Sequence record: ON287372.1
Direction: 5' to 3' (one strand)
Length of the DNA stretch: 64,000 nucleotides
Shown here: positions 3,393 to 59,229 of the stretch, in pieces
Position numbering within the stretch: the first letter of the stretch is position 1
Layout: every line of letters starts with the position of its first letter
Notes under the pieces: generated by a model
Database searches by the model: none
Told to the model about the DNA's origin: nothing
Seen by the model: only the letters and a program-made list of their open reading frames with translations
Program-made: the position numbers and the translations under genes

Positions 3393-3422
3393 CCTCTAGT
3401 AGACCAAAAGGTCTACTAGAGG
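3393..3422 (-). terminator. Intrinsic terminator-like hairpin
   Basis: 13-bp perfect stem cctctagtagacc-aaaa-ggtctactagagg right after the stop at 3430. Confidence 0.7.
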
Positions 3423-3429
3423 TTTTATG

Positions 3430-3528
3430 CTACCTAGCTTGAAGTGAGATAGCAATTAGAATTACGATCAATGGCAGCGCCAGGAATATAAAGCCTAAAG
3501 CAAAATAGATCTTTAGAAAGCGCGTCAT
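3430..3528 (-). CDS. Single-TM mini-protein (32 aa)
   Basis: Manual: MTRFLKIYFALGFIFLALPLIVILIAISLQAR; start overlaps the upstream stop (TAATG). Confidence 0.55.
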   Translation of the reverse strand: MTRFLKIYFALGFIFLALPLIVILIAISLQAR

Positions 3529-3695
3529 TATTTATCGGCCCGTACCAGTAGTTTGTACAGAACATAACCGCCGAGTGGATCAAAGATCATGGAGATCCAG
3601 AACCAGGTCTTAAAGCTTGCGCCTTTAGATTGGGCGCGTGAACCGATGATCAAAGAACCAATAATCCAGAGAACCAGTGCGATAACGATATGCAT
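3528..3695 (-). CDS. Small membrane protein (55 aa)
   Basis: Manual: MHIVIALVLWIIGSLIIGSRAQSKGASFKTWFWISMIFDPLGGYVLYKLLVRADK; AAGGAAG RBS. Confidence 0.7.
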   Translation of the reverse strand: MHIVIALVLWIIGSLIIGSRAQSKGASFKTWFWISMIFDPLGGYVLYKLLVRADK

Positions 3696-3720
3696 TTTCT
3701 ACTTCCTTTAACTAAGAGAT

Positions 3721-3751
3721 AAAATAGAGTTAGGCGGAAACCGCCTAACTC
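3721..3751 (-). terminator. Intrinsic terminator
   Basis: gagttaggcgg-aaa-ccgcctaactc, with a U-tract on the minus strand. Confidence 0.75.
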
Positions 3752-3757
3752 GTATGG

Positions 3758-4033
3758 TTACATTAACGATTTTATTTTTTCAATCTTCTCTTCGATTTCT
3801 TCAACCGGAGCGTCTAAGTAATAAGCAATCTCTTCTGCCATTACTCCACGATCTAAACACTCAGCGATACCTAAGAGATGATTCAATTCACGTGAACGAT
3901 TGGCTAATGCATTCACATCGCCATTATGGCGCTTGTACTCTTCGAAGGCTTTATCTTGGTTACGAACCGCGAGTTCTAATTCGTCTTGGATAAAGCCACC
4001 GTCGAGAGATAATTTACCAGCGTAAGAATTCAA
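3758..4033 (-). CDS. Hypothetical protein (91 aa)
   Basis: ORF track; helical acidic protein; overlaps upstream gene. Confidence 0.75.
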   Translation of the reverse strand: MNSYAGKLSLDGGFIQDELELAVRNQDKAFEEYKRHNGDVNALANRSRELNHLLGIAECLDRGVMAEEIAYYLDAPVEEIEEKIEKIKSLM

Positions 4034-4187
4034 TACAAACCCTCCCGTTATCGTCCGTTGGTTCTGACAGGGTATGGTACCCGTTCAGACGTTTGAGATC
4101 GATATCCGGTTGATACCCGATAATGTTTTCAATTACCGACTTCACCGTACGGATAGGCCTTACTACCGGTAAATCTTCTTCTTTCAT
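4014..4187 (-). CDS. Hypothetical protein (57 aa)
   Basis: ORF track 4014..4214; start trimmed to MKEED with GAGGG RBS. Confidence 0.6.
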   Translation of the reverse strand: MKEEDLPVVRPIRTVKSVIENIIGYQPDIDLKRLNGYHTLSEPTDDNGRVCIEFLRW

Positions 4188-4198
4188 TTTACCCTCGC

Positions 4199-5077
4199 TT
4201 ACTCCGGACCCCACATGCTTTGAGTAGGGTCAGTAGGAGTTACTTTAGGTTGTTCTGGCGTAAAGGTAGCTTCCAGGTAACCATTGACGTATTTAGAGCC
4301 AACATTATTAAAGTCAAAGGATTCAATCCAATCCTTCAAGCGTTTTTCGTGAGCTTCATCAACCGTCGTATCGGCTTTATCGGTTACCTGAAACTCAACG
4401 TCGGCTCCATCGAGTTTCATAGTGAAGTTGTAACCAATAGCCAGCATTAGCTTAACTAATTCAGCTTGGGTTTTATCTACAACAATTTTAGTTGCGACCG
4501 GAACCGACTCTGCTGGAGCAGGGTCTTCAGTAGGAGCGTTGGAGTCCTCTGTGTCTTCAGTAAACCAGATATCAATTGTGCGGTAATCTACCGAGATTTT
4601 ATTGAACCAACCAACAGGCTTTTCTTCAGGCAGCCCGATGTAAGCACGAATAGGGACTTCTCGACTGAACCCCTGGTCATCCACGTCACAGACGGCGAAG
4701 CAACGAGGGACGAACAACCAACCCCAGTTATTGAAGCCGAGTTCAAAGTCGGATACAGAAGTACCGAATGCTTTAGGGTCAACGACCTCCAATTTAACGG
4801 AGACGATTGCTTCTTCGCTATCTAAACGAAGACCACCGGCACGAATTACGTAATCCGGATTGACGGCCAAATCATAATGATCTTGACCGTGGTACTGTCT
4901 ACGAGTAGCGTGGCCAACAAACCGACCGTACATATCGGTACTGGTGTATTGGGACCGCAGAATGCCAAAGACAGTCTGCATATCGCGATAAGATAAATTC
5001 ATCGCTTTGGCAGATTCAAAAATACCAAACGTAATTACGTAGGTATTGTCGGACAATTGCTTTACAGTTGTTTTCAT
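4199..5077 (-). CDS. Hypothetical protein (292 aa)
   Basis: ORF track; AGGAGAG RBS; acidic/Pro linker suggests two domains. Confidence 0.85.
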   Translation of the reverse strand: MKTTVKQLSDNTYVITFGIFESAKAMNLSYRDMQTVFGILRSQYTSTDMYGRFVGHATRRQYHGQDHYDLAVNPDYVIRAGGLRLDSEEAIVSVKLEVVDPKAFGTSVSDFELGFNNWGWLFVPRCFAVCDVDDQGFSREVPIRAYIGLPEEKPVGWFNKISVDYRTIDIWFTEDTEDSNAPTEDPAPAESVPVATKIVVDKTQAELVKLMLAIGYNFTMKLDGADVEFQVTDKADTTVDEAHEKRLKDWIESFDFNNVGSKYVNGYLEATFTPEQPKVTPTDPTQSMWGPE

Positions 5078-5745: not shown

Positions 5746-5754
5746 GTGATATAG
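5746..5754 (-). promoter_or_regulatory. Putative early promoter CTATATCAC
   Basis: Motif match in a divergent intergenic region. Confidence 0.65.
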
Positions 5755-6361: not shown

Positions 6362-7966
6362 GTGATTACAATGAATGAAGCTATCTCAATTTCAAAACTA
6401 CCGGAGCAGATGGATCTTTACGACACGGATTATCTCAGTGTTGTAGATACGGCCAACATGCAGACTGGTAAGATTACGGTCCAGACTCTCCGCGATCTCC
6501 TTAACTACAAAGGAGCCTTCTCTTCCATTTCTGATGGCATAGCTAAGACTAAAATTGGCCAAGTCTTCTACGTTTACAAACCAGAAGAAAATGGGGATAA
6601 TTTTAAAGTAAGTCCATTCCTGCGGTATGGAGCAGGCGCAGTCGAACTTAAAGACGAGCTTGGTAATGAGATATTCTTCTATATCTCCGATAAAATTATC
6701 AAGTCACTTATCGATCGCGTTAGTGTTCTCTACGATCAACAGTTCAAAGGTGAGACAGTAGGCGACTACGGTAAGTCTAAGGCATTGACTGAATGGAAAG
6801 GTGAACGCGGTCAATTCGATGTATGGCCGACATTGAGCCAGCCATTGAATGGCGCAGGTACTTCCTTTGGCGGTAGCGAATACCGTGCTTTCCTGATGGT
6901 TAATGGTAACGGCGAAATTGTTACCCAGCTTAGAGATAAGAATCGTCCAATCACACGCATCACGCATACGCCATATGTTGCCGACTCTGGCCGTTCCGGT
7001 CCCGATGGACAAATGTCACGCATTCTTAAGATTCCCGCCAACGGTAAGACAGATGTAAACAACGAATACGAAATGGAGTTCTCTACTGGGAACACCAATA
7101 AGCCAGTGGTAAAAATTCGACACCCATTGTTATTTGAAGGAGCGCCGGGTTGGGAAACGCGTACAATTACGGTTCCTGACGAAGCTAAATTCCGACCTAA
7201 CTCATCTATCTACTATCAGAAGATACCTACTGAAGCAACTTCCGGTACGATTATCCCTGGCGTAGATTATCGAGTTAAAATGGGCCGTTCTGCCACGGGT
7301 ACTGCCTTGCACGTCTATATCCGTAATCCGCAAGGTAACTTTATCTGTTCGCTGGTTAACTCCGGAATGAGCGCCTACCTCAGCTTTAAAGTTAAGGGTG
7401 ACACTAAGTACGGACTGTACAAAGTTTTTCCCAAAGCTGAGTATTACCTTAGTGGTGATGGCGCTAACATGACTCACCTGATGATCGATGGCTATACTAC
7501 TGATCCAGACGGGAACCCAGCTGATATTGCCAAGACTCCAGGAACGGCCCCTACAGATGCTGCCTGTGGTTTTGATAACATTACCCTCATCGCATTGCCT
7601 AAGGAAACTACGATGGTTACAGGCACCAAACTGACCGATCCTTTCAACAATGCTACGTTTAACGTTAACGATGCGTTTACGTTGACTCGTGCGGTGAAGG
7701 ATTCGATCCGTGCTCCAGGTCAGTACATCGATAAGACTGTAGTTACAGGTGTTAACTTCGACGCCAAAACAACTACGACTGAGGTTGTTAAGGTCGCTAA
7801 TCCAGGATTCGTCCTTGATTTGACATATAACCGTAACTATCGTTTCGGTGCCCCCGCATCGACTGTAACTACTATCATGTCGATGATTGTTCCTTACGAA
7901 GCCTGGGACTTGGTACATTTAAACTTCATGAATCCGGAAATAATGGGATACGGTAAAGATGCCTAA
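6362..7966 (+). CDS. Tail fibre/tailspike-associated virion protein (534 aa)
   Basis: N-terminus (ISKLPEQ...AFSSISDGIAKTKIGQVFYVY) parallels that of the 9600 tailspike; beta-rich body. Confidence 0.7.
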   Translation: MITMNEAISISKLPEQMDLYDTDYLSVVDTANMQTGKITVQTLRDLLNYKGAFSSISDGIAKTKIGQVFYVYKPEENGDNFKVSPFLRYGAGAVELKDELGNEIFFYISDKIIKSLIDRVSVLYDQQFKGETVGDYGKSKALTEWKGERGQFDVWPTLSQPLNGAGTSFGGSEYRAFLMVNGNGEIVTQLRDKNRPITRITHTPYVADSGRSGPDGQMSRILKIPANGKTDVNNEYEMEFSTGNTNKPVVKIRHPLLFEGAPGWETRTITVPDEAKFRPNSSIYYQKIPTEATSGTIIPGVDYRVKMGRSATGTALHVYIRNPQGNFICSLVNSGMSAYLSFKVKGDTKYGLYKVFPKAEYYLSGDGANMTHLMIDGYTTDPDGNPADIAKTPGTAPTDAACGFDNITLIALPKETTMVTGTKLTDPFNNATFNVNDAFTLTRAVKDSIRAPGQYIDKTVVTGVNFDAKTTTTEVVKVANPGFVLDLTYNRNYRFGAPASTVTTIMSMIVPYEAWDLVHLNFMNPEIMGYGKDA

Positions 7967-9515
7967 AATTTATTACATCGACCCCTCTTCCCGCACTAAC
8001 GGAGATGGTACAATTAACAAACCGTTCAACTCACTGAATGAAATTGTTAAGCAACCCTACCCGTATACTGCGTTGATTAAACGGGGAACAGTAGAGAGAG
8101 TCTCTATCACTCTACCTAGTATGACCGGACAAGTAGAGCGGACAACAATCGGCTCTTATGGTTCTGGTATTCGTCCGGTTCTTTTACCTAAGAGCGCAGG
8201 TAGTCCAATAATTACCTCAACACTAGTTAAACACCTGCTGATTACTGATATCGATTTGACGATCGATCTTTTCTCCTACACCTCAGAGAATGCGATCTTC
8301 CTTCGGGCAGACAGTGAAGGTGTTGGTAACAATGTTGCTGACGTAGGTATCACCAACGTCGACGTTATTTATCAGACTACCGTCGTGACTAAGACAAAGG
8401 CATTCTTTATCGATGCCATTGGCGGTGCTAATTTGACGTACAGTAATGATGACTTGTACATCAAGAATTGTAACGTCTACGGCGGACATTGGGCGGCGCA
8501 GATCAACGGAGGTGGTGCTTATTACAGCATTAACGGAGGCGATACCTATCGCGCTAAACGGATGTTAATCGATAACTGTTCCCACATCGATGGTGTTGGT
8601 GACTCATGGATGGCAATGCGTGCTAATGGTGAAGGTAAAGCTTGTATCACGAACTGTTATTCTAAGTCATCTGCTTACCGGACTGATACAAGCATCTATA
8701 CCGCGGCCATCTGGATGTATGGGTGCGAGAATACTGGTATAGAGTACTGCGAAGTTGCAGGGACACTACCTAACCGTTACGACAAGATGGGATTCGATAT
8801 CGACGGTAACAATAAAGATGTCTGGGTTCGTTACTGTTACAGCCACAACAACGCCGGCGGCTTCATCATGTTCGCCGACGCAGAAAGTAAAGGGAAGAAC
8901 TTCGCTTCATTAGCTGAGGCAGAACAATTCCTTATTACGGAGCAGCACGGTATTCAGAATTGCGTATTCGAATACTGTCTGTCCTACAATGATGGCGTTG
9001 CTCGTGGTGGATATGGCGGACGCTGGCCTAAGATAACGCTCGTAAGTAACCCGGTTAATTGCGCAGTTCGTAACTGTACGATCATCGATACGATCAGTAA
9101 GACCGATCTACACCTAGTCGAGCTGCTGGAGTACTACTACGAACCTATCTGGAAGAAATACCCGATGGTGATGGAGAACAACGTGTTCTACTTCAAGTAT
9201 CCTCGATACCGTGAAGGTAGCGGTCCTCCTGGGGAAATTGGTTATGGCAACTTCAAGAACATCATCTGGCGTAACAACATCTTCTGGACAGAGACAGGGG
9301 ATCCACGCGATTGGAACCCTCGGTCAGGTACGGTAGTTAACTCTATCTTTACCGATCCTAAATTGTCTTACTTAACGGATGTTCCTCCGAGTGGCCTGGA
9401 AGCTGCTAAGTTGATTAAGTTGTTGACAGGCTCTGCTGCACTCAATAGCGGTACTACCAACTCATTACCGGACATCCTTGGTAATCGTGGTAACAACATC
9501 GGCTGGTTGCAGTAA
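7959..9515 (+). CDS. Right-handed beta-helix (pectin-lyase-like) protein, candidate polysaccharide depolymerase (518 aa)
   Basis: YYIDPSSRTNGDGTINKPFNSL start motif; Asn/Cys/Gly beta-helix repeats (IEYCEV, FDIDGNN, VRYCYSHNNAGG); D-ILG-N...NIG C-terminal motif. Confidence 0.75.
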   Translation: MPKIYYIDPSSRTNGDGTINKPFNSLNEIVKQPYPYTALIKRGTVERVSITLPSMTGQVERTTIGSYGSGIRPVLLPKSAGSPIITSTLVKHLLITDIDLTIDLFSYTSENAIFLRADSEGVGNNVADVGITNVDVIYQTTVVTKTKAFFIDAIGGANLTYSNDDLYIKNCNVYGGHWAAQINGGGAYYSINGGDTYRAKRMLIDNCSHIDGVGDSWMAMRANGEGKACITNCYSKSSAYRTDTSIYTAAIWMYGCENTGIEYCEVAGTLPNRYDKMGFDIDGNNKDVWVRYCYSHNNAGGFIMFADAESKGKNFASLAEAEQFLITEQHGIQNCVFEYCLSYNDGVARGGYGGRWPKITLVSNPVNCAVRNCTIIDTISKTDLHLVELLEYYYEPIWKKYPMVMENNVFYFKYPRYREGSGPPGEIGYGNFKNIIWRNNIFWTETGDPRDWNPRSGTVVNSIFTDPKLSYLTDVPPSGLEAAKLIKLLTGSAALNSGTTNSLPDILGNRGNNIGWLQ

Positions 9516-9523
9516 TAAACAAC

Positions 9524-9549
9524 GAGTAGAGCGGGTAACCGCTCTACTC
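9524..9549 (+). terminator. Hairpin (terminator-like) followed by TATG
   Basis: gagtagagcgg-gtaa-ccgctctactc, then tattatg. Confidence 0.65.
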
Positions 9550-9599
9550 TATTATGCAAGTTCCTATGAATTCCAGCTTAAACTTAATAAGGTTGTAAC

Positions 9600-14465: not shown

Positions 14466-14493
14466 AAAAAATAAAAGGAGCCGAAGCCCCTTT
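14466..14493 (-). terminator. Intrinsic terminator with UUCG loop
   Basis: Minus strand AAAGGGGC-UUCG-GCUCCUUU-UAUUUUUU. Confidence 0.75.
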
Positions 14494-14508: not shown

Positions 14509-14865
14509 TTACTTGATGTAAGAGTTGCGAACAGTGACGATATGAGTACCGCCGTTAGGTACGTTACCGGTACCGTCGATGATATCGAAAGTGATTTCAT
14601 CGATTGGGTAACCTGACAACCAGCCGCGTTGGTTGGCGTTAGTGGCCGCTTTGATAATCGACTTGATGCGATTGATCAGCAGCGTCACGTTGCCGTTCTG
14701 GGCGACTTTGTTGGTGTATTTATCGGCATAAGAGATGCCGTTGATTTTCAGGCGAACTGGAGAACGGAAGACGATACGTACGCCTTCGAGTTCCATTACC
14801 TGAGCTTCCAGGTCGGACAGGCTGAAGGTGGTATTCTGTTTTACTGCGTTATTTGTATTGCTCAT
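14509..14865 (-). CDS. Hypothetical early protein (118 aa)
   Basis: ORF track 14509..14916; start trimmed to MSNTNN with AGGAG RBS; own promoter and terminator. Confidence 0.8.
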   Translation of the reverse strand: MSNTNNAVKQNTTFSLSDLEAQVMELEGVRIVFRSPVRLKINGISYADKYTNKVAQNGNVTLLINRIKSIIKAATNANQRGWLSGYPIDEITFDIIDGTGNVPNGGTHIVTVRNSYIK

Positions 14866-14939: not shown

Positions 14940-14948
14940 GTGATATAG
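14940..14948 (-). promoter_or_regulatory. Putative early promoter CTATATCAC
   Basis: Motif match in intergenic region. Confidence 0.65.
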
Positions 14949-14957: not shown

Positions 14958-15263
14958 TTATTTCATTTGGTAACTTTTACGGTAAGTTTTATCAAGTTCC
15001 CCGCCGAACCCTTTCAGTACCAGATCCTCACTGAAGAAGCCAGTGCCCCAGAGGATAGGTTTACCCATAGTACGAGCTTTAGTTAACTCATCCCAGAGTT
15101 TACGTCCGTCATCACTACTCCCTACGATGTTACGGAACTTACCATCGTTGGACAAAAGGAACATACCGTTATCGGAGAATCCACCATGAGTAACGGTTTC
15201 CCCGAATGATTCTTCCATATCGGAAGCTGCTACGATTGCAGTTGGAAGTGACATCATGACCAT
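14958..15263 (-). CDS. Hypothetical protein (101 aa)
   Basis: ORF track; GGAGAG RBS. Confidence 0.75.
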   Translation of the reverse strand: MVMMSLPTAIVAASDMEESFGETVTHGGFSDNGMFLLSNDGKFRNIVGSSDDGRKLWDELTKARTMGKPILWGTGFFSEDLVLKGFGGELDKTYRKSYQMK

Positions 15264-15279: not shown

Positions 15280-15306
15280 AAATAGGCTAGGGGAAATCCC
15301 CTAGCC
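15280..15306 (-). terminator. Intrinsic terminator
   Basis: ggctagggg-aaat-cccctagcc with UAUUUU on minus. Confidence 0.75.
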
Positions 15307-15313
15307 GTTATGA

Positions 15314-15559
15314 TTACTCTTCGCCAGTGTGCTTCAACTTACGGCGAGTATCGGAGAAACGCTCACCGAATACTTTACCGTGATTAGCGCACATCCAGCA
15401 ACTACATGCTTTAGGCGTCGTTGCAACCTTACCGATAACAACTTTGTCACTAACGATACGATTACCATTGAACCAGTAACCAGCAACGCCATAGTGGCGA
15501 ACAGCTTGTTTCTTAAGTTCACGTTTGTAACGACGGAAAGCACGAGTACGATTTGCCAT
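15314..15559 (-). CDS. Small basic protein with C-S-C-W-M-C motif (81 aa)
   Basis: MANRTRAFRR...TPKACSCWMCANH...RRKLK; resembles a widespread uncharacterised family. Confidence 0.75.
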   Translation of the reverse strand: MANRTRAFRRYKRELKKQAVRHYGVAGYWFNGNRIVSDKVVIGKVATTPKACSCWMCANHGKVFGERFSDTRRKLKHTGEE

Positions 15560-18392: not shown

Positions 18393-18430
18393 GTAACACC
18401 TCTCTATATTAGTCGGAGATACGTTAAAAG

Positions 18431-18455
18431 CGAGTAGGGGAAGAACCCCTACTCG
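18431..18455 (-). terminator. Terminator-like hairpin
   Basis: cgagtagggg-aagaa-cccctactcg. Confidence 0.7.
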
Positions 18456-18463
18456 TCTATGGT

Positions 18464-19534
18464 TTAAAGTTTAGAGGGAAACGGTTTCAACTTCATGCCG
18501 CCAATGTTAACCTCAGTCATTTTGAGATGTTTGATTTTAGCTGGGATGTAGTTACCCCCATCGTCACGGGCAAAGACGGCCTCGTAACGTGCCCCCATTT
18601 TGTCCAGGAAAGCAGGAACCTTATCCGGATCGATAGCCAGCACGAAACTATCGTACTTAGGCGTAGGGGATGTAATACCCGGTAAGTTAGCGTGGACGTG
18701 ACCCACGTAGATAGGAGGGAGATGGATAGATGGAAGATAGATCATCCCGTGGAGCTGCAGGATCTGATGAGCCACCATCGGATCTTTTGCCTCGATCGCC
18801 TTAATCATCGCATCAGTAGACAGCCGGTCATTCCAGATATCTACAACTGCTGTTACTTGCTCCGCGGTAAGGAAACAAATGGACTTACCGTAGACGGTAT
18901 GACTAACGCCGTAATAGTACTTAGCGGCTTGTTCAGACAACCATAGGTCATAGTCAGTCCCTTTAGGGATGACTGTATATTCCAGATCCTCAGCGCCATG
19001 TGGCACATGGATATACGGCGTCGTGTAGTAAGTCTTCTCTGCTTCATCCAGCGGGTCGTAAGGGAACTTAACCGGAGTACGTTCCCCGAAGCTTTGCCAT
19101 GTAGTGTAGGTATCGTTAGGGTGGACTCTAGAACGATAGCACGCTGTCCATTCACCGTCGCGCTTAACGAGATCGTAACCTTCGTAATAGGTCATATTCG
19201 ACATCTGGTCGTATTTGACTTTACCTGGGTCGATCTCTTCAAGTACATCGATTTGATGACCGGCTTGTAAAAGATCACAAACTCGGAGTATGACACGAAC
19301 TATGTTAGGTTTTGTTTGCCAGAAAGAGGTAACTGCCGCGAGTAACGCAGGTTGGTCAGTTATATGGTTTCTCAGCTCGTGCAGCGGAAAACGACTACTC
19401 AGCAAATAAGAGTATTCGCCATCAGCCACGAGGAACAAGTCAATGAACCCCTCTGCGAAGTTAACCATCCAAGGAGTAAAACGTTTGGAGTTCTGGAAAC
19501 CTTTCTTGTATTTCTCTAATGTAGCGATGCTCAT
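18464..19534 (-). CDS. Hypothetical protein (356 aa)
   Basis: Long ORF; coupled start. Confidence 0.85.
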   Translation of the reverse strand: MSIATLEKYKKGFQNSKRFTPWMVNFAEGFIDLFLVADGEYSYLLSSRFPLHELRNHITDQPALLAAVTSFWQTKPNIVRVILRVCDLLQAGHQIDVLEEIDPGKVKYDQMSNMTYYEGYDLVKRDGEWTACYRSRVHPNDTYTTWQSFGERTPVKFPYDPLDEAEKTYYTTPYIHVPHGAEDLEYTVIPKGTDYDLWLSEQAAKYYYGVSHTVYGKSICFLTAEQVTAVVDIWNDRLSTDAMIKAIEAKDPMVAHQILQLHGMIYLPSIHLPPIYVGHVHANLPGITSPTPKYDSFVLAIDPDKVPAFLDKMGARYEAVFARDDGGNYIPAKIKHLKMTEVNIGGMKLKPFPSKL

Positions 19535-20787: not shown

Positions 20788-20814
20788 CAAAAATAAGAGA
20801 GGGCCGAAGCCCTC
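20788..20814 (-). terminator. Intrinsic terminator, UUCG loop
   Basis: gagggc-cgaa-gccctc with a U-tract on minus. Confidence 0.7.
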
Positions 20815-21322: not shown

Positions 21323-21344
21323 GAGTAGGGTGTTCACCCTACTC
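21323..21344 (-). terminator. Terminator-like hairpin
   Basis: gagtagggtg-tt-caccctactc. Confidence 0.6.
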
Positions 21345-23108: not shown

Positions 23109-23145
23109 ACAAAAAAATAGAGGACGAGGGTTTACGCCCTCGCCT
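23109..23145 (-). terminator. Intrinsic terminator
   Basis: Minus AGGCGAGGGC-GUAA-ACCCUCGUCCU then U-run. Confidence 0.7.
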
Positions 23146-23151
23146 TATGAA

Positions 23152-23280
23152 TCAGTCTTCGTCATCAATGACGGTACCAGCTTCTTCCTCTTCCTCTTCT
23201 TCCTCATCGAGCTCCCCCGCAGCAGAAGAACAGATCATTGCCTTCATTAGAAACTCCATAAAACCATCTAATGCGCTCAT
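23152..23280 (-). CDS. Highly acidic mini-protein (42 aa)
   Basis: Manual: MSALDGFMEFLMKAMICSSAAGELDEEEEEEEEAGTVIDDED; AGGAG RBS; own promoter and terminator. Confidence 0.7.
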   Translation of the reverse strand: MSALDGFMEFLMKAMICSSAAGELDEEEEEEEEAGTVIDDED

Positions 23281-23323: not shown

Positions 23324-23332
23324 GTGATATAG
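23324..23332 (-). promoter_or_regulatory. Putative early promoter CTATATCAC
   Basis: Motif match about 45 nt upstream of the acidic mini-gene. Confidence 0.65.
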
Positions 23333-23351: not shown

Positions 23352-24407
23352 TTAGGGGTTAAAAAAGTGATCTGGAACTCTACCCTTTATTCCGTCACAG
23401 AACTTTTTAAGAGCCACCATAAATTCATCAGTCATGTAGGGAACGTCGATATCCTCTACGGTATAATAATCGAATGTACAGAGATATGCCCTACTTCTAA
23501 GCTTAGTGCATGCCCTAGTTATGGAGTTTTCCTTAAATCCATTTTTAGCCATGTGGGATATCTTGACTTTAAAACGCTGCCCTCTATTAAAACCAGGTAT
23601 ATCAGTATCTAAAGTAACAACCGCGGTTCTTCCAAACCCTAACTCCGATACATCTAAATCATCAGGTACAATTAGGTTAGGTTGACCCACTTCCTGATTT
23701 ATCCTCTCCCACCTAAACTTAAATCTAACTCCTTTTACTGAAGCGCTGGTGGGAATCTCGTACGGGAACCCACGGTCAGCGAGTTCCCTAAGTCTTCCAT
23801 ATATGGTAAACCCAGATTTAAATCTACCATGATCGTAAACTAATGTACCCTTGTAATAACCAACCGACTTCAAATTAGTCTCTACAGCATGACGTATGTT
23901 ACCTGCTGGGGTAGTCCATTCTAAGTTGGTCATGGAAGGGTTAGTTTTATCGCCATCAATATGGTTCACTTGCAAATCTTTAAATTCCACTTTTCTCAAT
24001 TCTAATGGCCTTGGGATAAAAGTAGAGGCAATTAAACGATGTAACAAGTAAGTTACTCCATCATGCTCCGCCTTATGGTAGTCTTCCGAGATAGCAATAG
24101 ATTTACTTCTGTCGATGGTGATTAATCCATTTGCCCTAGTTACGGATTCCGACACACCATTGCTAACACTAATTTTACAAATGTTCCCTTTTGTTGAGAT
24201 TAGCCAATCTCCCCATTGTTGGATTAAAGGGCCAGATTTACGTTTACTCCAGTAATATCTAGGGAATTCCCAAAATTCATATTCCGGGTACCTGGTCAAG
24301 AATAACCTTAGTTTCTCTACGATACACAACTCACCATTAGCGCCAAATTCTTTTTCAAATTTAGCAATGAAATCAGCATGGTTATCTTTACCATTAAAAA
24401 TGTTCAT
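23352..24407 (-). CDS. Free-standing HNH homing endonuclease (NUMOD4/HNH-like, 351 aa)
   Basis: YLLHRLIASTFIP...QVNHIDGDKTNPSMTNLEWTT..NIRHA; visibly more AT-rich than its neighbours. Confidence 0.9.
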   Translation of the reverse strand: MNIFNGKDNHADFIAKFEKEFGANGELCIVEKLRLFLTRYPEYEFWEFPRYYWSKRKSGPLIQQWGDWLISTKGNICKISVSNGVSESVTRANGLITIDRSKSIAISEDYHKAEHDGVTYLLHRLIASTFIPRPLELRKVEFKDLQVNHIDGDKTNPSMTNLEWTTPAGNIRHAVETNLKSVGYYKGTLVYDHGRFKSGFTIYGRLRELADRGFPYEIPTSASVKGVRFKFRWERINQEVGQPNLIVPDDLDVSELGFGRTAVVTLDTDIPGFNRGQRFKVKISHMAKNGFKENSITRACTKLRSRAYLCTFDYYTVEDIDVPYMTDEFMVALKKFCDGIKGRVPDHFFNP

Positions 24408-24432: not shown

Positions 24433-24467
24433 CATAATAATGCCGGGAAATCCCGGCATTATTTTTT
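24433..24467. promoter_or_regulatory. Hairpin with T-tract on plus and TATGA on minus, between phoH and HNH
   Basis: cata-ataatgccggg-aaat-cccggcattat-tttt; orientation opposite to the other terminators of minus-strand genes. Confidence 0.55.
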
Positions 24468-25257
24468 ACTTGTAAATGTCCAGGGCAGTAGAACAAAGTT
24501 TAGATCTTACGCAGTCATCATCAGTAAATTCAATGATAGGTACGTCTATAGATTTAGACTTAATTCGGTTAATCAGGTCAACTAGACCAGATTTAGTTCC
24601 TTTAGGAAGGTCGCATTGATTAGGGTCACCGTTTACGATGATAGTGACATTCTCCCCCACACGAGTTAAGAACAACCGCATTTGGTTAACAGTTACATTT
24701 TGCGCCTCATCAAGGATAACGATGGCGTCCTCAAAAGTCCGTCCGCGCATAAATGCAAAGGGAGCTATTTCGACCTTTCCAATTTCTTCACGTAAACAAT
24801 ACTTCAGCCAACCGTCACCCATACGTTTACGTAAGATGTCATAAACTGGCCTGAAGTAAGGTGCAAATTTTTCATTGGCGTCGCCCGGAAGGAAGCCCAT
24901 TTCCTCTTCTGCAGTAACCATAGGTCGAGTTACAATAATTTTCTCGTACCTTTTTTCAGAAAGTTGTTCTACTGCATACGCACTGGCTAAGAAGGTTTTT
25001 CCAGAGCCGGCCGAGCCTGTAGCTACGATGAGGTCAGATAGTTCTAATGCATTAAGGTACAGTGCCTGATTATCATTACGAGGCTCTATTGGCCGAGTGT
25101 CCTTTTTACACTTAGCCATACCTATACTTTCGTGACTAGCAAATCCGTTGTCGTTGGTTGGGAACTCAACGAGATTGCTTTCAAAACCACGGTTAGCTTG
25201 TCTCTTTGCTTTACGAACATCGCGACGTTTAACTGTCGCGGCTTTTTGACGTCCCAT
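24466..25257 (-). CDS. phoH: PhoH-family ATPase
   Basis: GSAGSGKTFLA, TRP, GFLPG, FMRGRTF, DEAQN, GD..Q.DL motifs. Confidence 0.95.
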   Translation of the reverse strand: MGRQKAATVKRRDVRKAKRQANRGFESNLVEFPTNDNGFASHESIGMAKCKKDTRPIEPRNDNQALYLNALELSDLIVATGSAGSGKTFLASAYAVEQLSEKRYEKIIVTRPMVTAEEEMGFLPGDANEKFAPYFRPVYDILRKRMGDGWLKYCLREEIGKVEIAPFAFMRGRTFEDAIVILDEAQNVTVNQMRLFLTRVGENVTIIVNGDPNQCDLPKGTKSGLVDLINRIKSKSIDVPIIEFTDDDCVRSKLCSTALDIYK

Positions 25258-26959: not shown

Positions 26960-26985
26960 AAAAATAAATGGGGACCGAAGTCCCC
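26960..26985 (-). terminator. Intrinsic terminator, UUCG loop
   Basis: ggggac-cgaa-gtcccc with a U-tract on minus. Confidence 0.7.
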
Positions 26986-27498: not shown

Positions 27499-27801
27499 TT
27501 ATTTAACTTCGTAAACGTCGATGTAAGTTGGTTTATCGGTTACGGCATCAAACATTGCAACAGTTACGTTGTTGCCATCGATGGACTTACGGAGATACAA
27601 GTGATCACCGTTAGAACATTTGTAGCCTGAAGTTCTTTCTTTTACGAAGACGAACTTACAGGTCAGATTGTCTATGGATACGTAGTCACCTACTATGGTA
27701 ACAACTTCATTCTTATCAGACACTAGAACCATATCGGCACTAGCTTGAGCTGAGAAGAAAGAAGTAGCGATTAAAGCCAGGGAGATGATTAATTTTTTCA
27801 T
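27499..27801 (-). CDS. Secreted small protein, divergent/shortened family A-like (100 aa)
   Basis: Signal ...AQASA; Cys pair only 13 residues apart; own early promoter. Confidence 0.8.
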   Translation of the reverse strand: MKKLIISLALIATSFFSAQASADMVLVSDKNEVVTIVGDYVSIDNLTCKFVFVKERTSGYKCSNGDHLYLRKSIDGNNVTVAMFDAVTDKPTYIDVYEVK

Positions 27802-27856
27802 TATAGTTTCCTTTTTAAGTCGGTAGTTTTAGGGCTTTTCTATCAGCCTTCACCGC

Positions 27857-27896
27857 GGTTATATAGATGCCAAAAAAATTGGAAATGGATATAATA
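27857..27896 (-). repeat. 40-bp early-promoter cassette, copy 2 (CTATATAAC at 27858-27866)
   Basis: 39/40 identical to 3351-3390. Confidence 0.9.
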
Positions 27897-36667: not shown

Positions 36668-36700
36668 AATATAACCTTCCTCTATCTGAATAGAGGAAGG
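36668..36700 (-). terminator. Terminator-like hairpin
   Basis: ccttcctctat-ctga-atagaggaagg. Confidence 0.7.
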
Positions 36701-40075: not shown

Positions 40076-40104
40076 ATAAATCCCAGGGGATTAACTCCCC
40101 TGGG
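40076..40104 (-). terminator. Intrinsic terminator (TTAAC-loop family)
   Basis: cccagggga-ttaac-tcccctggg. Confidence 0.75.
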
Positions 40105-40118
40105 CTATGACAGTTTGA

Positions 40119-40817
40119 TCAACCAATGCGATAAGGGAACCCGTGACCATCGAGTTCCTGCGCCGCGGCCTCATCGAGTTTAACGATGAACCGACTCACC
40201 GCAACCATCAGGCTGAGTAGCTCTTTAGCGGTAGTTACCTTGGCGATACCCCACGACTCATCGTCGTTGTCTTCATCGAACTGGAACGTATTCATTCCGA
40301 CGTAGATAGGATCAACGAAGGTGTCCATGATCTCGACCGACTCGCCGCTGTAGGAGAAATCGCTCCCAATGACGTAGTCAATTCCGATGATGTTCCGCCG
40401 CCAGATATCCATATTGACAATGAACGGAATCGATACTTTCTCAGCATCTGTCAAATTATCGAAATTGGAATGGCCGGCGATAGCGTAGAATACCTTGATC
40501 GTCGTTTTGGTAGCTTCGCGATAGTTCCCAACTGAGTTTTCCATCTTGAACAGATAGTCCATGATGAATTTGTAGTGGTCACCGGAAACCAGACGGCAGT
40601 AGGTTTTGTAGTTGATATCCAGCAAACGTTCCCAATAATCAGACGAACGATATTGGGAAACGACGCGTTCCGGACAATGTCCAGTCCAGCGGAATTCAGC
40701 CAGCTGAGTAGTCAGTTCGGCAACCTTAAGCGCATGTTCTACGGAATGGTCACCGAAGTAGCGTGCGTGGTTTGCAATTTGAAGCTCTGATCGAATCTTC
40801 TTCTCTACAGTTTTCAT
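40119..40817 (-). CDS. Hypothetical protein (232 aa)
   Basis: ORF track. Confidence 0.85.
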   Translation of the reverse strand: MKTVEKKIRSELQIANHARYFGDHSVEHALKVAELTTQLAEFRWTGHCPERVVSQYRSSDYWERLLDINYKTYCRLVSGDHYKFIMDYLFKMENSVGNYREATKTTIKVFYAIAGHSNFDNLTDAEKVSIPFIVNMDIWRRNIIGIDYVIGSDFSYSGESVEIMDTFVDPIYVGMNTFQFDEDNDDESWGIAKVTTAKELLSLMVAVSRFIVKLDEAAAQELDGHGFPYRIG

Positions 40818-42867: not shown

Positions 42868-42876
42868 GTAATATAG
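42868..42876 (-). promoter_or_regulatory. Putative early promoter CTATATTAC
   Basis: Exact match to TATATTAC. Confidence 0.7.
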
Positions 42877-44263: not shown

Positions 44264-44836
44264 ATGATTTTCTCAATTGACCCCACTCTTACGTCGGATG
44301 AGATGATTCGCCAGCTTCTCGGGTTTTCTTGTGGACAACCTATTGGGTACAATGACGTCAGTATAGGGTTACCTGAGCAAGTCTATACTGATCCGGGTGG
44401 AACGAATACTGAACTGAAGATCACTCGTAAGCCAGGCTCTACCAACATTAAACCAGGTGGGCCACAAACCATCATTCGTCGCTACCGTCGGTTGGAGATG
44501 GGTTACTTCTGCAGCGGGCTCCATCCAGAGGAAACCGAGTATTTCTCCTCTATGGACCCTACCCTAGAAAATTTCAACAGAATGTTCCACACCAAATTCA
44601 CTAAAGCGGATCTTAATATCGAGATAACGTATCGTGAAGAAGGTAAATATCGGGATGTTAAAGTAACGGTCGCTGAAACCCATTACGGTTTCTACGGATC
44701 CTTTATTTTCTCTCGTAATGAAGGGGATGGTAAAGTAAGTATCATTGACGCTTACTCTGGGGAAATGCCTGGGTTCGAAGGCGGTACTTATCAAACACCC
44801 GTTTCCATCGGTATCTTCGACGGTGTTGAACCGTAG
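44264..44836 (+). CDS. phiKZ-like virion structural protein (same anchor family, 190 aa)
   Basis: NTELKIT...RRYRRLEM...VTVAETHYGFYGS parallels 43185 gene; GGGGG RBS. Confidence 0.8.
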   Translation: MIFSIDPTLTSDEMIRQLLGFSCGQPIGYNDVSIGLPEQVYTDPGGTNTELKITRKPGSTNIKPGGPQTIIRRYRRLEMGYFCSGLHPEETEYFSSMDPTLENFNRMFHTKFTKADLNIEITYREEGKYRDVKVTVAETHYGFYGSFIFSRNEGDGKVSIIDAYSGEMPGFEGGTYQTPVSIGIFDGVEP

Positions 44837-44861: not shown

Positions 44862-44897
44862 CATAGAGAGTACTCCCAAGCGGGAGTACTCTCTTTT
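44862..44897. terminator. Bidirectional terminator between convergent genes, preceded by CATA
   Basis: agagagtactccc-aagc-gggagtactctct-ttt. Confidence 0.8.
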
Positions 44898-44901
44898 ATG
44901 G

Positions 44902-45471
44902 TCAGCTACGGGTAAAACGGGAAATGAATACATTACCGCTTCGAGCTTCAGTGAACTCCATCATCAAATAGAGCTTGGTATCAGCGATGTTATCGCCGGT
45001 TTTGAGCTTGGCATTTATCTCAAAGTTTACCGTCAGTTTCTCCTGACCGTAAACCACTGGCTTAAACCACTCAATCAACCGAGGCGCTAAATCAATCATG
45101 GTTTGGTTGAGATTATGGATGTCGATAACTACGTCGGAGTTAACTGCGTTGTAGAAAGTACAAGTAACTCCGCTGGTGTTTAGATCAAAACGACTTCCCT
45201 GGGCGGCGTAACGAATGTTGTGAATTTCTTCACCTTCACCATAAATCTCAAAACCAGCATTAGTAAACGCCTCTACCATTTCATCGCCACGAGTTTCTTT
45301 AACGATGCGCTGGATATTGGCAAATACGAACACCGGACAAGCTGGGTTTTTGATGGACATAATCTCATCAGCTGCCTTACTGCATTCTTTCCAGAGAGCT
45401 TCTAATGGGGTGTTGTCAAAGATGCTAGTTTTACGTTGTTTCTTGATCTTTTCAAAAAGTGGAGATGACAT
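44902..45471 (-). CDS. Hypothetical protein (189 aa)
   Basis: ORF track; AAGGA RBS. Confidence 0.8.
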   Translation of the reverse strand: MSSPLFEKIKKQRKTSIFDNTPLEALWKECSKAADEIMSIKNPACPVFVFANIQRIVKETRGDEMVEAFTNAGFEIYGEGEEIHNIRYAAQGSRFDLNTSGVTCTFYNAVNSDVVIDIHNLNQTMIDLAPRLIEWFKPVVYGQEKLTVNFEINAKLKTGDNIADTKLYLMMEFTEARSGNVFISRFTRS

Positions 45472-47003: not shown

Positions 47004-47012
47004 GTGATATAT
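47004..47012 (-). promoter_or_regulatory. Putative early promoter ATATATCAC
   Basis: One mismatch to the recurring motif, in an intergenic region. Confidence 0.55.
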
Positions 47013-48342: not shown

Positions 48343-48361
48343 TAGAAAATCCTCCTGATTT

Positions 48362-48386
48362 CCGTAGGGGTAGTTAGCCCCTACGG
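48362..48386 (-). terminator. Terminator-like hairpin
   Basis: ccgtagggg-tagttag-cccctacgg. Confidence 0.7.
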
Positions 48387-48396
48387 ATTATGATAG

Positions 48397-50777: not shown

Positions 50778-50810
50778 AAAAAAATAAAGCCAGGGGAATT
50801 AACCCCTGGC
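50778..50810 (-). terminator. Intrinsic terminator (AATTAA-loop family)
   Basis: gccagggg-aattaa-cccctggc with a U-tract on minus. Confidence 0.8.
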
Positions 50811-50817
50811 GTATGAT

Positions 50818-51159
50818 TTAACTACTTTGGACCTTCCAGGAATGTGGCCAAATAATTGGCTGATAATCCGCAAAGGAAACTGTCTTACCTTTATCAACTT
50901 CCCGCAGAATCGATTCGGTCAGAGTACTAAGCTCGTCGGCCGTTGAAATGAAATTACGGTTGTTGTAGCGAAGGTCGAACTTATACCCAAGGGCAGGTAC
51001 CTGGAACTTATCTTCGAACAGTTTTCCATTGAATGAGATGTCACCGAACTCATTCAACGATACGAAGTGCCAGGCCTGATCGCCAACAATTTTGTACGTT
51101 GCTGACTTGGTCAAAGCTTCAACGACTAAAAAGATTTCTTTTCCCATTGGATTCACCAA
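50818..51159 (-). CDS. Hypothetical protein (113 aa)
   Basis: ORF track. Confidence 0.75.
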   Translation of the reverse strand: MVNPMGKEIFLVVEALTKSATYKIVGDQAWHFVSLNEFGDISFNGKLFEDKFQVPALGYKFDLRYNNRNFISTADELSTLTESILREVDKGKTVSFADYQPIIWPHSWKVQSS

Positions 51160-54727: not shown

Positions 54728-54758
54728 GAAAATAAACGAGAGGGAATTAACCCTCTCG
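54728..54758 (-). terminator. Intrinsic terminator (AATTAA-loop family)
   Basis: cgagaggg-aattaa-ccctctcg. Confidence 0.75.
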
Positions 54759-54765
54759 CCTATGA

Positions 54766-55005
54766 TTACGAATTGTACTTTAGATCAACCATTTCCTTCA
54801 GACCAGTAGCTTCTGCACCCAGCGCTTTACGCTTGACTGCACAAATAGCTTCCAGTTCTTCCAGATTGAACCACCCATCCAACTGAACCTGCGCAGTGGC
54901 GTCGTTGTGGAAGTTGATCCACTCACTAGTGCCAGCAATGAGTTCATGAGCGGTTTCGAGGATACGTTGCTCCTCTTCTTCCTTGGTAATGATTTTCAGG
55001 CCCAT
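54766..55005 (-). CDS. Hypothetical protein (79 aa)
   Basis: ORF track. Confidence 0.75.
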   Translation of the reverse strand: MGLKIITKEEEEQRILETAHELIAGTSEWINFHNDATAQVQLDGWFNLEELEAICAVKRKALGAEATGLKEMVDLKYNS

Positions 55006-57309: not shown

Positions 57310-57779
57310 TCCTTTCCGCCTTTAATAACAGAGAATGGGTTAGCGCGAGCTACTGAGCGCTCCATCGGTACGAAGTCGTTCACCTTAGTCAGGTTATCGA
57401 CATCTGGGTTAGTCTTAACTAAACTACCCAGACTGCTCTGAACGGTTTCCTCGCCCATCCACTTAACTGGCATTGGCAATGGATAAATGCCCAGGTCTTG
57501 GTGGTTAGGTGCCCACATCATCTCGATGTGATCCCAGGCGAAGAAGTCTTTTTGTTTACGGCCGCCAAAGCCAGCTTCGAATTCAATCCCTGCATTAGAG
57601 ACGTGCATACGGGCTGCTCTCATGGAGATGTTGAGATTAACAACGCCATTGTTAGCGTAGCTACGAATGACTGGGTTAGCAATCCCATCGGCATTTACGG
57701 ACATGAAGATCTTACCGTCGCCATTTTCGGACAGCATTGTGTAGAACGAATTGAACAGATATTGGTTAACGCAGAACAT
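57306..57779 (-). CDS. sspB: SspB-like ClpXP protease adaptor
   Basis: YLFNSFY..L..N...Y.NNG.V.LNIS.RA......IEFEAGFGG parallels E. coli SspB; C-terminal PFSVIKGG resembles the ClpX-binding tail. Confidence 0.8.
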   Translation of the reverse strand: MFCVNQYLFNSFYTMLSENGDGKIFMSVNADGIANPVIRSYANNGVVNLNISMRAARMHVSNAGIEFEAGFGGRKQKDFFAWDHIEMMWAPNHQDLGIYPLPMPVKWMGEETVQSSLGSLVKTNPDVDNLTKVNDFVPMERSVARANPFSVIKGGKE

Positions 57780-57794
57780 GCACTAACTCCCTAA

Positions 57795-58202
57795 TTAGTT
57801 GAGGTTGTTGTATTTACGGCCATCGAAGTAGAACTTGATCTGTTGGAACCAAGAACCCTGATTGGTGTCGATTGCTGCTTCGTAGCGAACCCACGCTGCA
57901 TTCACATCACGACGGATATGCCGACTGAAAACTTTCAAGCTATTACGCATAGGGTCTTTCTTGACCGCTACCATAACCAGCTCGTAAAGTGCGAGTTTGG
58001 ACAAGAAACTAATACGACGTGCCCTGATTTTATTTTTTGGCGAGGTGAATTCCTTCTCCCCGAAATTCTGCCAGGTGAAACGAGATAACTTACTTTCTAA
58101 TAAATGAAGGTAGTCTTCCCGGTCTGAATGATGGTTGATGCAATTGAATTCTGCTTTTGCTTGCGCAAGTAAACCGGAGAAGCTACGTTTCATCATTTTC
58201 AT
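57795..58202 (-). CDS. Hypothetical early protein (135 aa)
   Basis: ORF track; AAGGA RBS; promoter at 58254. Confidence 0.75.
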   Translation of the reverse strand: MKMMKRSFSGLLAQAKAEFNCINHHSDREDYLHLLESKLSRFTWQNFGEKEFTSPKNKIRARRISFLSKLALYELVMVAVKKDPMRNSLKVFSRHIRRDVNAAWVRYEAAIDTNQGSWFQQIKFYFDGRKYNNLN

Positions 58203-58253
58203 TTACGAATTCCTTAAAAGGGTTAATTTAGAGTTTGTACTCTATTCAATTAA

Positions 58254-58262
58254 GTAATATAG
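58254..58262 (-). promoter_or_regulatory. Putative early promoter CTATATTAC
   Basis: Exact match to TATATTAC. Confidence 0.7.
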
Positions 58263-58265
58263 CTT

Positions 58266-58766
58266 TCAAATGGATTCGAAATCGTATTCAGTCTTCAATG
58301 TCTCCCAGAAACAAACCAGAGCGGTTCCTCCTCGAGCATCTTGGACTTTCCATTCCCCAATCCATGTGGGCTTACCAGAATCCCAAGTTGCTTTACCGAA
58401 TACGTAGTAATGCATAAGCGGTAATTTGTTATTCTTGAATGCTTCGAGTTGTCGCGGATACGCTTCAATCTTAGCCCGGTTACCTTCATGAATAACCTTC
58501 AAGAAGTTGTCATCGTGCACAGTGGTAAACGTGTTACCTACCTTCTTGGCCTCATATCCCCAGAGCTTCCGTAGCTCCTCATGTTGATACCCCGTCTTAG
58601 CGTAGTACCACAGACCTTCCATGGATTCGAAATGCCCTAACGTTGGGTGTTCGAATGGAGTTCGGCTGAAGTGGGACAGGAATCTCCCGAGCATACTCCT
58701 TGATTTGGAGTAGATGTTGATGTGGGTTTCTCCGTCCTTGTTTGGATCGAGTTCTGCGTCTCCCAT
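58266..58766 (-). CDS. NADAR/YbiA-like protein (tentative; 166 aa)
   Basis: HINIYSKS...LGRFLSHF..TPF....FESMEGLWYYAK...GYEAKKVG. Confidence 0.6.
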   Translation of the reverse strand: MGDAELDPNKDGETHINIYSKSRSMLGRFLSHFSRTPFEHPTLGHFESMEGLWYYAKTGYQHEELRKLWGYEAKKVGNTFTTVHDDNFLKVIHEGNRAKIEAYPRQLEAFKNNKLPLMHYYVFGKATWDSGKPTWIGEWKVQDARGGTALVCFWETLKTEYDFESI

Positions 58767-59167
58767 ACTTTCCCCTTATTAGATCTATTGTTAGAATCAG
58801 TGAAGTACATAGCCATGAATATCAGGGCAATCATTGCGAAGAGTATTGAATACTTCCTGTCTTTTATTTGAGCAATACGCTCCTTCTCGATCGCAGCAGC
58901 ATCAACAGTATCCATCTCTTCCAACATTGTAGTGATGAATTCGTCTTGGAGTTCTTTAGCTTTTGATTCTGCCCCGCTTCTACGTCTGTACGTCGTGTAG
59001 TAATGATTACCGACTTGATCCATGTACTGGCTGGTTTTCTTGTCTACTAGGCTGAGCGGTAAATCATTGTTCCCCATGATTGCACCGTTGGCGTTAACTA
59101 CGACAAAACCTACCAATCCATCGTTGTCTTCTTGTTCCCTAACGTAAAAGAATTTGCCGCCAGACAT
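58637..59167 (-). CDS. Hypothetical membrane protein (176 aa; 3' end overlaps the next gene by 130 nt)
   Basis: ORF track; AAGGA RBS; TM near residue 110. Confidence 0.7.
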   Translation of the reverse strand: MSGGKFFYVREQEDNDGLVGFVVVNANGAIMGNNDLPLSLVDKKTSQYMDQVGNHYYTTYRRRSGAESKAKELQDEFITTMLEEMDTVDAAAIEKERIAQIKDRKYSILFAMIALIFMAMYFTDSNNRSNKGKVWETQNSIQTRTEKPTSTSTPNQGVCSGDSCPTSAELHSNTQR

Positions 59168-59185
59168 TATAATTCCTTCTGATGT

Positions 59186-59216
59186 AAAATAAGGTGAGAG
59201 GAATTACCCTCTCACC
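59186..59216 (-). terminator. Intrinsic terminator (AATTAC loop)
   Basis: ggtgagagg-aattac-cctctcacc. Confidence 0.75.
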
Positions 59217-59229
59217 GCTATGACACTTA

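Follow-up and report, generated by a model that had tools for sequence, protein, structure and literature searches.

Hairpins and flanking TATG sequences in the window

The stretch of DNA analysed here (the window, 64,000 nt) comprises positions 62001-126000 of the genome of Serratia phage vB_SmaS-Totoro (ON287372.1, 278,767 bp), a member of the genus Moabitevirus. The element under study is a GC-rich hairpin at gene and operon ends, which is flanked, mostly on the plus strand, by the tetranucleotide TATG (CATA when read on the other strand). The nearest relatives of Totoro are the phages Moabite, 2050HW, BUCT660 and others, with an identity of about 82% across the alignable third. Several split β and β′ RNA polymerase genes and a tubulin-like protein are annotated in the Totoro record. 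The capsid protein matches phiKZ-like phages with about 24% identity, and a full-length homologue of phiKZ gp123 is encoded two genes downstream of the capsid gene (29% identity, E 2e-73). Based on these gene matches, Totoro is a phiKZ-like jumbo phage and should use its own virion and non-virion polymerases for transcription. Within the window, matches to sigma-70-like promoters do not exceed the number expected from shuffled sequence, and host-type promoters were rejected on this basis. The polymerase genes annotated in Totoro are all of the multisubunit type; no search aimed at an N4-like single-subunit polymerase was made.

The whole Totoro record was analysed as eight separate loci, which were never joined. 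Genes were classified genome-wide with our own strand-guided open reading frame calls, which, within the window, agreed with the annotation at 102 of 113 gene ends. Intergenic perfect hairpins were defined by a stem of at least 7 bp with at least 4 GC pairs, a definition that imperfect stems escape. TATG was used in the form given by the window sequence and by the cited papers.

An earlier note on this DNA had listed 13 plus-strand TATG copies behind hairpins, eight of them reading TATGA, and all coordinates and the extended motif were confirmed. Every position carries TATG, or CATA in the two minus-strand cases, at a distance of 0-4 nt from a GC-rich stem-loop, which corrects the gap of 1-5 nt given before. 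In the orientation of the minus-strand genes, the stop codon is followed after 1-100 nt by CATA, after a further 0-4 nt by the hairpin and then by (T)TTATTTT, in agreement with the proposed mRNA layout of stop codon, CAUA, stem-loop and tail. The stems are 7-14 bp long with at least 4 GC pairs, the loops measure 3-8 nt, and no common sequence is shared. The hairpins occupy intergenic gaps past stop codons, and they are GC-rich stem-loops that end a gene or operon, as is typical for the intrinsic terminators of phiKZ. The number of terminator-like sites is roughly double the shuffled expectation. A plain scan for a hairpin plus T-run is passed by the plus faces at 3392-3423, 15285-15306, 18430-18456, 44865-44894 and 50789-50810.

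The following minus-strand genes are ended by terminator hairpins with the plus-strand motif. The hairpin at 3727-3751 ends gene 3758-4033 and is followed by TATG 3753-3756; its Moabite counterpart has no CATA. Gene 15314-15559 is ended by hairpin 15285-15306 with TATG 15309-15312, which is kept in Moabite and BUCT660 and whose plus face is one of those passing the scan. The hairpin at 18431-18455, with TATG 18458-18461, ends gene 18464-19534; in Moabite, whose record lists the orthologous hairpin as a terminator, its flank is altered with CATA retained. An imperfect hairpin at 23122-23145 (gene 23152-23280, TATG 23146-23149) is replaced in Moabite by a different hairpin without CATA. Hairpin 27900-27927 ends gene 27939-28208 and carries TATG 27932-27935, and hairpin 32025-32048 ends gene 32060-32515 and carries TATG 32051-32054, with stem and loop altered and CATAGC retained in Moabite. 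A long imperfect hairpin at 34019-34055 ends gene 34063-35706 (TATG 34059-34062). The hairpin at 40082-40104 (gene 40119-40817, TATG 40106-40109) is kept in Moabite and BUCT660, while that at 50789-50810 (gene 50818-51147, TATG 50812-50815) is kept in Moabite and passes the scan on both faces. Genes 54766-55005 and 59230-60129 are ended by hairpins 54737-54758 (TATG 54761-54764) and 59193-59216 (TATG 59219-59222).

Two further hairpins of this group differ in their surroundings. The hairpin at 48361-48387 follows the minus-strand thymidylate synthase gene, carries TATG 48389-48392 on the plus strand and is kept in Moabite and BUCT660; its sense face has no U-rich tail and is directly followed by the ribosome-binding site of the next gene. 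The hairpin at 3393-3422 has a 13-bp stem and is followed, after TTT, by TATG 3426-3429, and its plus face passes the canonical terminator scan. It is situated just upstream of an early-promoter cassette on the minus strand, with the nearest stop codon about 100 nt away, a point on which the earlier description needs correction.

The same cassette is found on the minus strand past hairpin 27900-27927. Two near-identical blocks of about 50 nt (TATTATAYCCATTTCCAATTTTTTTGGCATCTATATAACC), at 3340-3392 and 27846-27899, follow the two hairpins on the minus strand, and together with these form a repeated terminator-plus-early-promoter cassette. The sequence TATAT[A/C/T]AC, mostly after C and a T-rich stretch, occurs on the minus strand in intergenic positions upstream of minus-strand genes, at 2434-2441, 3352-3359, 5746-5753, 14940-14947, 23324-23331, 27858-27865, 33975-33982, 42868-42875, 47004-47011 and 58254-58261. 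It agrees with the end of the published phiKZ early promoters (...GTATATTAC or ...ATCTATATTAC), about 10 nt ahead of the start. Judged by this likeness, the sites are probably early promoters of the virion polymerase and mark the region as early. This motif, the gp123 homologue and the split polymerase genes are all consistent with phiKZ-like multisubunit polymerases.

At the convergent junction of plus-strand gene 44264-44836 and minus-strand gene 44902-45471, hairpin 44865-44894 has boxes on both faces, and both faces pass the terminator scan. The mirror arrangement reported there, with CATA at 44862-44865, was found as described, and the same hairpin also carries TATG 44897-44900.

In two places the element points in sense into a following gene, the tailspike gene and the HNH gene, both considered plausibly late in the earlier note. 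The layout is as described, and both copies are better read as terminator boxes of the preceding genes. Hairpin 9524-9549 ends plus-strand gene 7959-9515 and has TATG 9553-9556 on its sense face; its orthologues in Moabite and BUCT660 carry the box on the other face too. A second TATG (9565-9568) is located 32 nt ahead of the tailspike start codon. As a tailspike promoter, TATG 9565-9568 is the better candidate, whereas TATG 9553 more probably signals the end of gene 7959-9515. Hairpin 24436-24463 ends the minus-strand PhoH-like gene, and the minus-strand TATG on its sense face (plus-strand CATA 24433-24436), 26 nt before the start of the HNH gene, is the terminator box of the PhoH-like gene. 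The HNH endonuclease gene itself (23352-24407, minus strand) is flanked by the PhoH-like gene and by the next small gene and has no counterpart there in Moabite or BUCT660; from this comparison it looks like a homing-type gene inserted in Totoro.

Enrichment, conservation and the box on both faces

The count against background that the earlier note called for shows an enrichment. Among the 18 intergenic perfect hairpins of the window, TATG follows within 0-5 nt of the stem on the plus side in 11, where 0.2 would be expected from the 120 plus-strand TATGs (binomial P ~1e-17), and on the minus side in one. To these 11 are added the sites at 23146 and 34059, whose stems are imperfect. For the whole record, CATA was found to be the top 4-mer in the 9 nt ahead of the stem, occurring at 22 of 76 hairpins where about 0.7 were expected (P ~4e-27). 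No CATA was found in control windows 20 nt further out from these 76 hairpins, and the reverse orientation of the hairpin-adjacent motif was found at none of them. With a looser hairpin definition, 9.1% of the TATGs of the genome lie just past a hairpin; among unrelated words the share is about 3%, and that of CATA is 1.4%.

The motif is conserved in orthologous terminators of Moabite and BUCT660 at the sites 15285, 18431, 32025, 40082, 48361 and 50789, while loops, stems and spacers vary. The orthologues of hairpin 34019-34055 in both relatives have an unrelated stem, and CATA is still present 2 nt ahead of it. At 3727 and 23122 the motif is missing from the orthologous sites of the relatives. 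The combination of hairpin and TATG is real and far removed from what chance would give.

When both sides of the 76 intergenic Totoro hairpins were compared, the outward trinucleotide TAT with a gap of 0-4 nt was the most frequent one on both faces. It was observed on 47 sense faces, followed by T (30), G (12) or A (5) and never by C, and on 44 antisense faces, followed by G (22), T (17), A (4) or C (1). TAT is present on both faces of 32 hairpins. Thus, TTAT and then G or T shortly past the stem, as in the phiKZ terminator, is found on either side, with G or T following 42 of 47 sense and 39 of 44 antisense TATs. The plus-strand TATG noted earlier is the G-form of this TAT(G/T) box on the antisense face of the hairpins. 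Of five terminators that had been listed as lacking the motif, three carry its TATT or TATA form on this face (14474-14493, 21323-21344 and 36675-36700).

A second type of terminator in the window has CTTCGG loops and a long T-run (14474-14493, 20799-20814, 26970-26985 and 60195-60214), and in none of these four does the antisense face carry the G-form of the box. In phiKZ, boxes with TATG are found together with TTCG loops, so the split seen in the window may be local. The minus-strand genes 14509-14865 and 14958-15263 have homologues in Moabite that are labelled 'putative toxin protein' and 'putative antitoxin', in both cases from weak matches in structure prediction. The products of both genes are called hypothetical in the Totoro record.

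The two-faced layout was observed in five phages. In phiKZ, TAT was found on 59 of 86 flanks, 34 of them with TATG, and on both faces of 24 hairpins. The layout is also present in Moabite, BUCT660 and 201phi2-1 (CATA-stem-TATG). Klebsiella phage FBKp24 has a TAT box on both faces and TATG on the sense face only. The two-faced box was not seen in SPN3US (50486-92237), where 18 strong hairpins include one with an outward TATG and plain T-runs follow the stems. As the terminators of SPN3US have plain T-runs, the box is, judged from these genomes, not universal among nucleus-forming jumbo phages.

The two flanks of the Totoro hairpins are not adapted to each other. Pairing of the real flanks (-2.45 kcal/mol) was no better than that of permuted flanks (-2.85 ± 0.21 kcal/mol), the corresponding values for the plus strand being -1.97 and -2.73 kcal/mol, and the gaps to the two boxes are equal in 3 of 32 hairpins. 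Pairing of CAUA with the downstream flank to extend the helix is ruled out for Totoro on this basis, and the hairpins do not show the paired, helix-lengthening flanks of a bidirectional terminator of the bacterial style. No Rfam family scored above threshold in the window. At the first position past perfect stems, sense-only G·U pairs numbered 20 and antisense-only pairs 6 where antisense TATG is missing, compared to 4 and 4 where it is present. This wobble-pair trend is suggestive of use in two directions, with numbers that are too small.

Mapped RNA ends in phiKZ and promoter-like TATG copies

The four letters of the motif have a known role in transcription. The late promoter of phiKZ has a TATG core with G as position +1 (Yakunina et al. 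2015, PMC4666361; structure in PMC12809450), as stated in the earlier note. According to one of the two explanations offered there, the hairpin-adjacent copies are late promoters of the non-virion polymerase, from which antisense transcripts would run into operon 3′ ends and provide a layer of shut-off or antisense control. The gp123-like subunit of Totoro, the presence of TATG upstream of the capsid and sheath genes and the avoidance of TATG elsewhere in the genome are in line with such promoters. In phage AR9, seven late promoters give antisense RNA (PMC5312081).

This explanation was compared with mapped phiKZ RNA starts and ends and their sequences (Tables S3 and S4 of bioRxiv 10.1101/2023.10.13.562163) over two 50-kb stretches of the phiKZ genome. 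The ends were obtained by ONT-cappable-seq with a resolution of about 2 nt, and 3′ ends may be trimmed. An RNA 3′ end on the same strand was found at position -1, +1 or +2 relative to the G for 14 of the 35 hairpin-adjacent TATGs in these 100 kb. A mapped start within 4 nt was found for none of the 35. The nearest starts are located 21-49 nt beyond these copies and originate from early, middle or other late promoters. As an example, a 3′ end at 101370 is one base beyond the G of a hairpin-adjacent TATG, and the start at 101390 is at the next TATG. At the convergent phiKZ hairpins 25214-25234, 34917-34937, 114215-114234 and 133072-133092, TATG is present on both faces and 3′ ends are mapped on both strands. 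The authors of the phiKZ study count only four antisense RNAs with a defined start in the whole genome. In phiKZ, as at 101344-101390 and 27659-27710, a hairpin-adjacent TATG with an RNA end is often followed 20-50 nt on by the start of the next unit, sometimes with another TATG. The tailspike leader in the window, with TATG at 9553 and 9565, has the same layout of two copies.

TATG is the second most depleted 4-mer of the Totoro genome (observed/expected 0.56) behind CTAG, and CATA is the fourth (0.65). When synonymous codons were shuffled within genes, with proteins and codon usage kept, the ratio for sense-strand TATG was 0.61 (z -21.8) and that for CATA 0.69 (z -8.9). Ratios of 0.59 and 0.79 were obtained for Moabite and phiKZ, while T5-like (1.08) and T4-like (0.96) phages show no depletion; these control stretches contain only 3 and 5 strong hairpins and are usable for 4-mer frequencies only, not for flanks. 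Antisense TATG has a density of 1.07 per kb inside genes and 4.08 per kb in intergenic regions. We conclude that TATG is a live signal in Totoro, and the depletion of antisense TATG in genes fits a pressure to limit antisense transcription.

Copies of TATG that resemble late promoters are distinguishable from those beside hairpins. Hairpin-free TATGs lie 24-97 nt upstream of long genes, such as those for capsid and sheath, and often read TATGTA. The next two bases are TA in 7 of 21 of these candidates and in 1 of 62 hairpin-adjacent copies, for which TT is the commonest following pair, as in the phiKZ terminator consensus. The GC fraction at positions -12 to -4 is 0.61 for hairpin-adjacent copies, where the preceding 9 nt belong to a GC-rich stem, and 0.41 for the hairpin-free copies upstream of long genes (P 4e-6). 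A late promoter should stand in sense upstream of a middle or late gene, in a context of no hairpin, meltable DNA upstream and permissive DNA downstream, whereas 30 of 34 TATG faces in Totoro look into a gene end and the context is a different one. The strong phiKZ promoter P119L has no hairpin.

Together with the missing phiKZ starts and the small number of antisense RNAs in that phage, these differences in context make antisense late promoters improbable at the Totoro hairpins. The boxes also follow late structural genes, which is a further point against such promoters. Together with the same bias in both regions of the genome, it led us to reject a role in the shut-off of early genes. The analogy to the hairpin promoters of phage N4, which had been drawn in support, probably does not hold either, as the annotated polymerase genes are split β/β′ genes and the late promoters of Totoro, like P119L, are without a hairpin. 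The other explanation offered, a phage-specific terminator code, came near the mark, although a reading from the other strand, with the box at the 3′ side of an antisense face, fits better than CAUA on the mRNA.

Interpretation and comparison with known systems

In our favoured reading, to which we assign a probability of roughly one half, the sites are intrinsic terminators like those of phiKZ that have an additional, antisense face. Each terminator would consist of the GC-rich stem-loop and the TAT(G/T) box 0-4 nt past the stem, where the transcript would end, and the plus-strand TATG would belong to the antisense face as its 3′ box. A polymerase moving along the plus strand would pass through the hairpin and halt at TATG, a median of 7 nt short of the last gene of the minus-strand operon. 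That the antisense faces in Totoro stop plus-strand transcription is what we infer from the phiKZ ends. Their use would plausibly be to confine antisense transcripts made by a polymerase with a four-letter promoter core.

Several points weigh against this reading. The support from 3′ ends comes from phiKZ and is carried to Totoro and the other members of Moabitevirus by analogy, and the mapped phiKZ ends could be trimmed ends instead of release points. At co-directional junctions, the antisense boxes of phiKZ have neither a mapped 3′ end nor a start. In Totoro, the side of a hairpin that faces a gene start mostly carries TATT, and the side that faces the end of the preceding gene mostly carries TATG. 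TATG was found on 30 of 89 gene-end faces and on 4 of 62 gene-start faces (Fisher P 5e-5), and TATT has the opposite bias (17 of 89 and 30 of 62). The corresponding numbers for TATG are 8 of 19 and 0 of 14 in Moabite, and 7 of 15 and 0 of 13 in BUCT660. Early-type and late regions of the Totoro genome alike show the bias. It counts against the reading because a purely symmetric terminator model does not predict it. A preference for G where there is no room for a U-run does not account for the bias, as TATG and TATT boxes are followed by similar T counts over the next 8 nt (3.2 and 3.4).

A bias of this kind is predicted if CAUA is an element of the sense mRNA in the 3′ untranslated region, between stop codon and hairpin, that aids termination, protects or processes the 3′ end, or is bound by a phage protein. 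Such an element is therefore the main alternative and keeps an appreciable share of probability, although we consider it unlikely. In Moabitevirus the G-form is almost confined to gene-end faces, in early-type and late regions, and hence to the 3′ untranslated region. The C is retained although its partner in the opposite flank is usually U, so pairing is not the constraint, and hairpin 48361-48387 is conserved with its CATA despite a sense face without U-rich tail. In Escherichia coli, bases just upstream of the terminator hairpin influence read-through (bioRxiv 10.64898/2026.07.06.736697). However, phiKZ, 201phi2-1 and FBKp24 carry the same letters 3′ of the hairpin, where in phiKZ the 3′ ends map, and an mRNA element would need a second function there. 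The orientation of the box follows the hairpin and not the gene, being always outward and never inward. The flank pairing and spacing described above and the lack of an Rfam match in the window also speak against it.

A further alternative is that the upstream CATA is of no use in Totoro and remains from an ancestral palindromic CATA-stem-TATG, as found in phiKZ, of which the downstream half drifted to TATT. The phiKZ hairpins are symmetric in this respect, with TATG on 12 of 28 gene-start and 18 of 46 gene-end faces, and their flanks pair more strongly than those of Totoro (-3.4 compared to -2.0 kcal/mol). CATA was lost at two of the compared orthologous sites. Yet a useless copy should decay in a genome in which TATG and CATA are strongly selected against elsewhere, whereas CATA is retained over about 18% sequence divergence, even where the whole stem was replaced. 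The base after the antisense TAT is, in addition, almost always G or T and only once C. We regard a mere remnant as slightly less probable than antisense promoters.

In phiKZ-like phages it is conceivable, though rather doubtful, that one polymerase pocket reads TATG for both start and stop and that the hairpin alone distinguishes the two. At a promoter, the β-like subunit would clamp the non-template TATG and thereby set the start at the G. At a terminator, the same pocket of the elongating enzyme, having passed the hairpin, would catch TATG and hold the enzyme, and the transcript would end at the G. If true, this would account for the avoidance of sense-strand TATG in genes, would help to explain the specificity of a four-letter promoter, and would explain the absence of the motif from phages like SPN3US if their pocket differs. 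In the pairwise alignment with the Totoro homologue, seven gp123 residues described as contacting bases comprise three identical positions, one conservative replacement and three differences, a comparison from which, at 29% identity, nothing firm on specificity follows.

With the hairpin and its box, operon ends can be marked by a simple rule in the genomes of Moabitevirus and of other phiKZ-like phages. Caution is also called for, as not every TATG is a late promoter: a copy 0-4 nt past a hairpin marks an RNA end, and the start, if any, is to be sought about 20-50 nt further on.

Compared to the late promoter of phiKZ, the hairpin-adjacent element of Totoro has the same four letters on the would-be non-template strand and shares their avoidance elsewhere in the genome. 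It differs by its GC-rich instead of AT-rich upstream DNA, by another downstream context and by mostly facing gene ends, and copies of this kind in phiKZ have no starts. The virion polymerase promoters of phage N4 are DNA hairpins near the start site. A DNA hairpin beside a possible start site is what the Totoro element has in common with them, while the split β/β′ genes of Totoro, stems without a shared sequence and the absence of starts at such sites in phiKZ set it apart.

Bidirectional intrinsic terminators are common in bacteria and consist of an A-rich flank, a hairpin and a U-run. The Totoro hairpins resemble them in that one hairpin would serve both strands and in flanks that are reverse-complementary in composition. 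They differ in that the flanks are a specific short box ending in G or T, not an A- or U-run, and are not co-adapted for pairing. For 201phi2-1, PMC11512511 describes a motif A that is said to resemble the phiKZ terminator and a motif B that joins motif A in 21 terminators and lengthens the hairpin, and gives 15 of 132 termination sites as bidirectional. The sequence arrangement CATA-stem-TATG is shared with these terminators, whereas the flanks in Totoro do not lengthen the helix.

The closest relative of the element is the phiKZ terminator itself (Putzeys et al. 2024, PMC10914365), for which ONT-cappable-seq yielded 61 terminators and a consensus of stem-loop, TTAT and then G or T. Both have the GC-rich stem-loop and TTAT(G/T) at gene or operon ends and belong to phages with their own multisubunit polymerases. 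The accessible portion of the published account gives the downstream half, whereas a mirror copy upstream is present in Totoro and, on inspection, in phiKZ itself. A further difference is that the G-form in Moabitevirus is nearly limited to the gene-end face, with TATT and a U-rich run on the sense face. The parts of the phiKZ and 201phi2-1 accounts accessible to us state neither the upstream mirror box nor the gene-end confinement in Moabitevirus, and in the accessible published accounts we did not find it stated that the terminator box is the core word of the late promoter, with 3′ ends at the promoter +1 base. The kind of terminator as such is already known from phiKZ and 201phi2-1, and Totoro adds a member to it.

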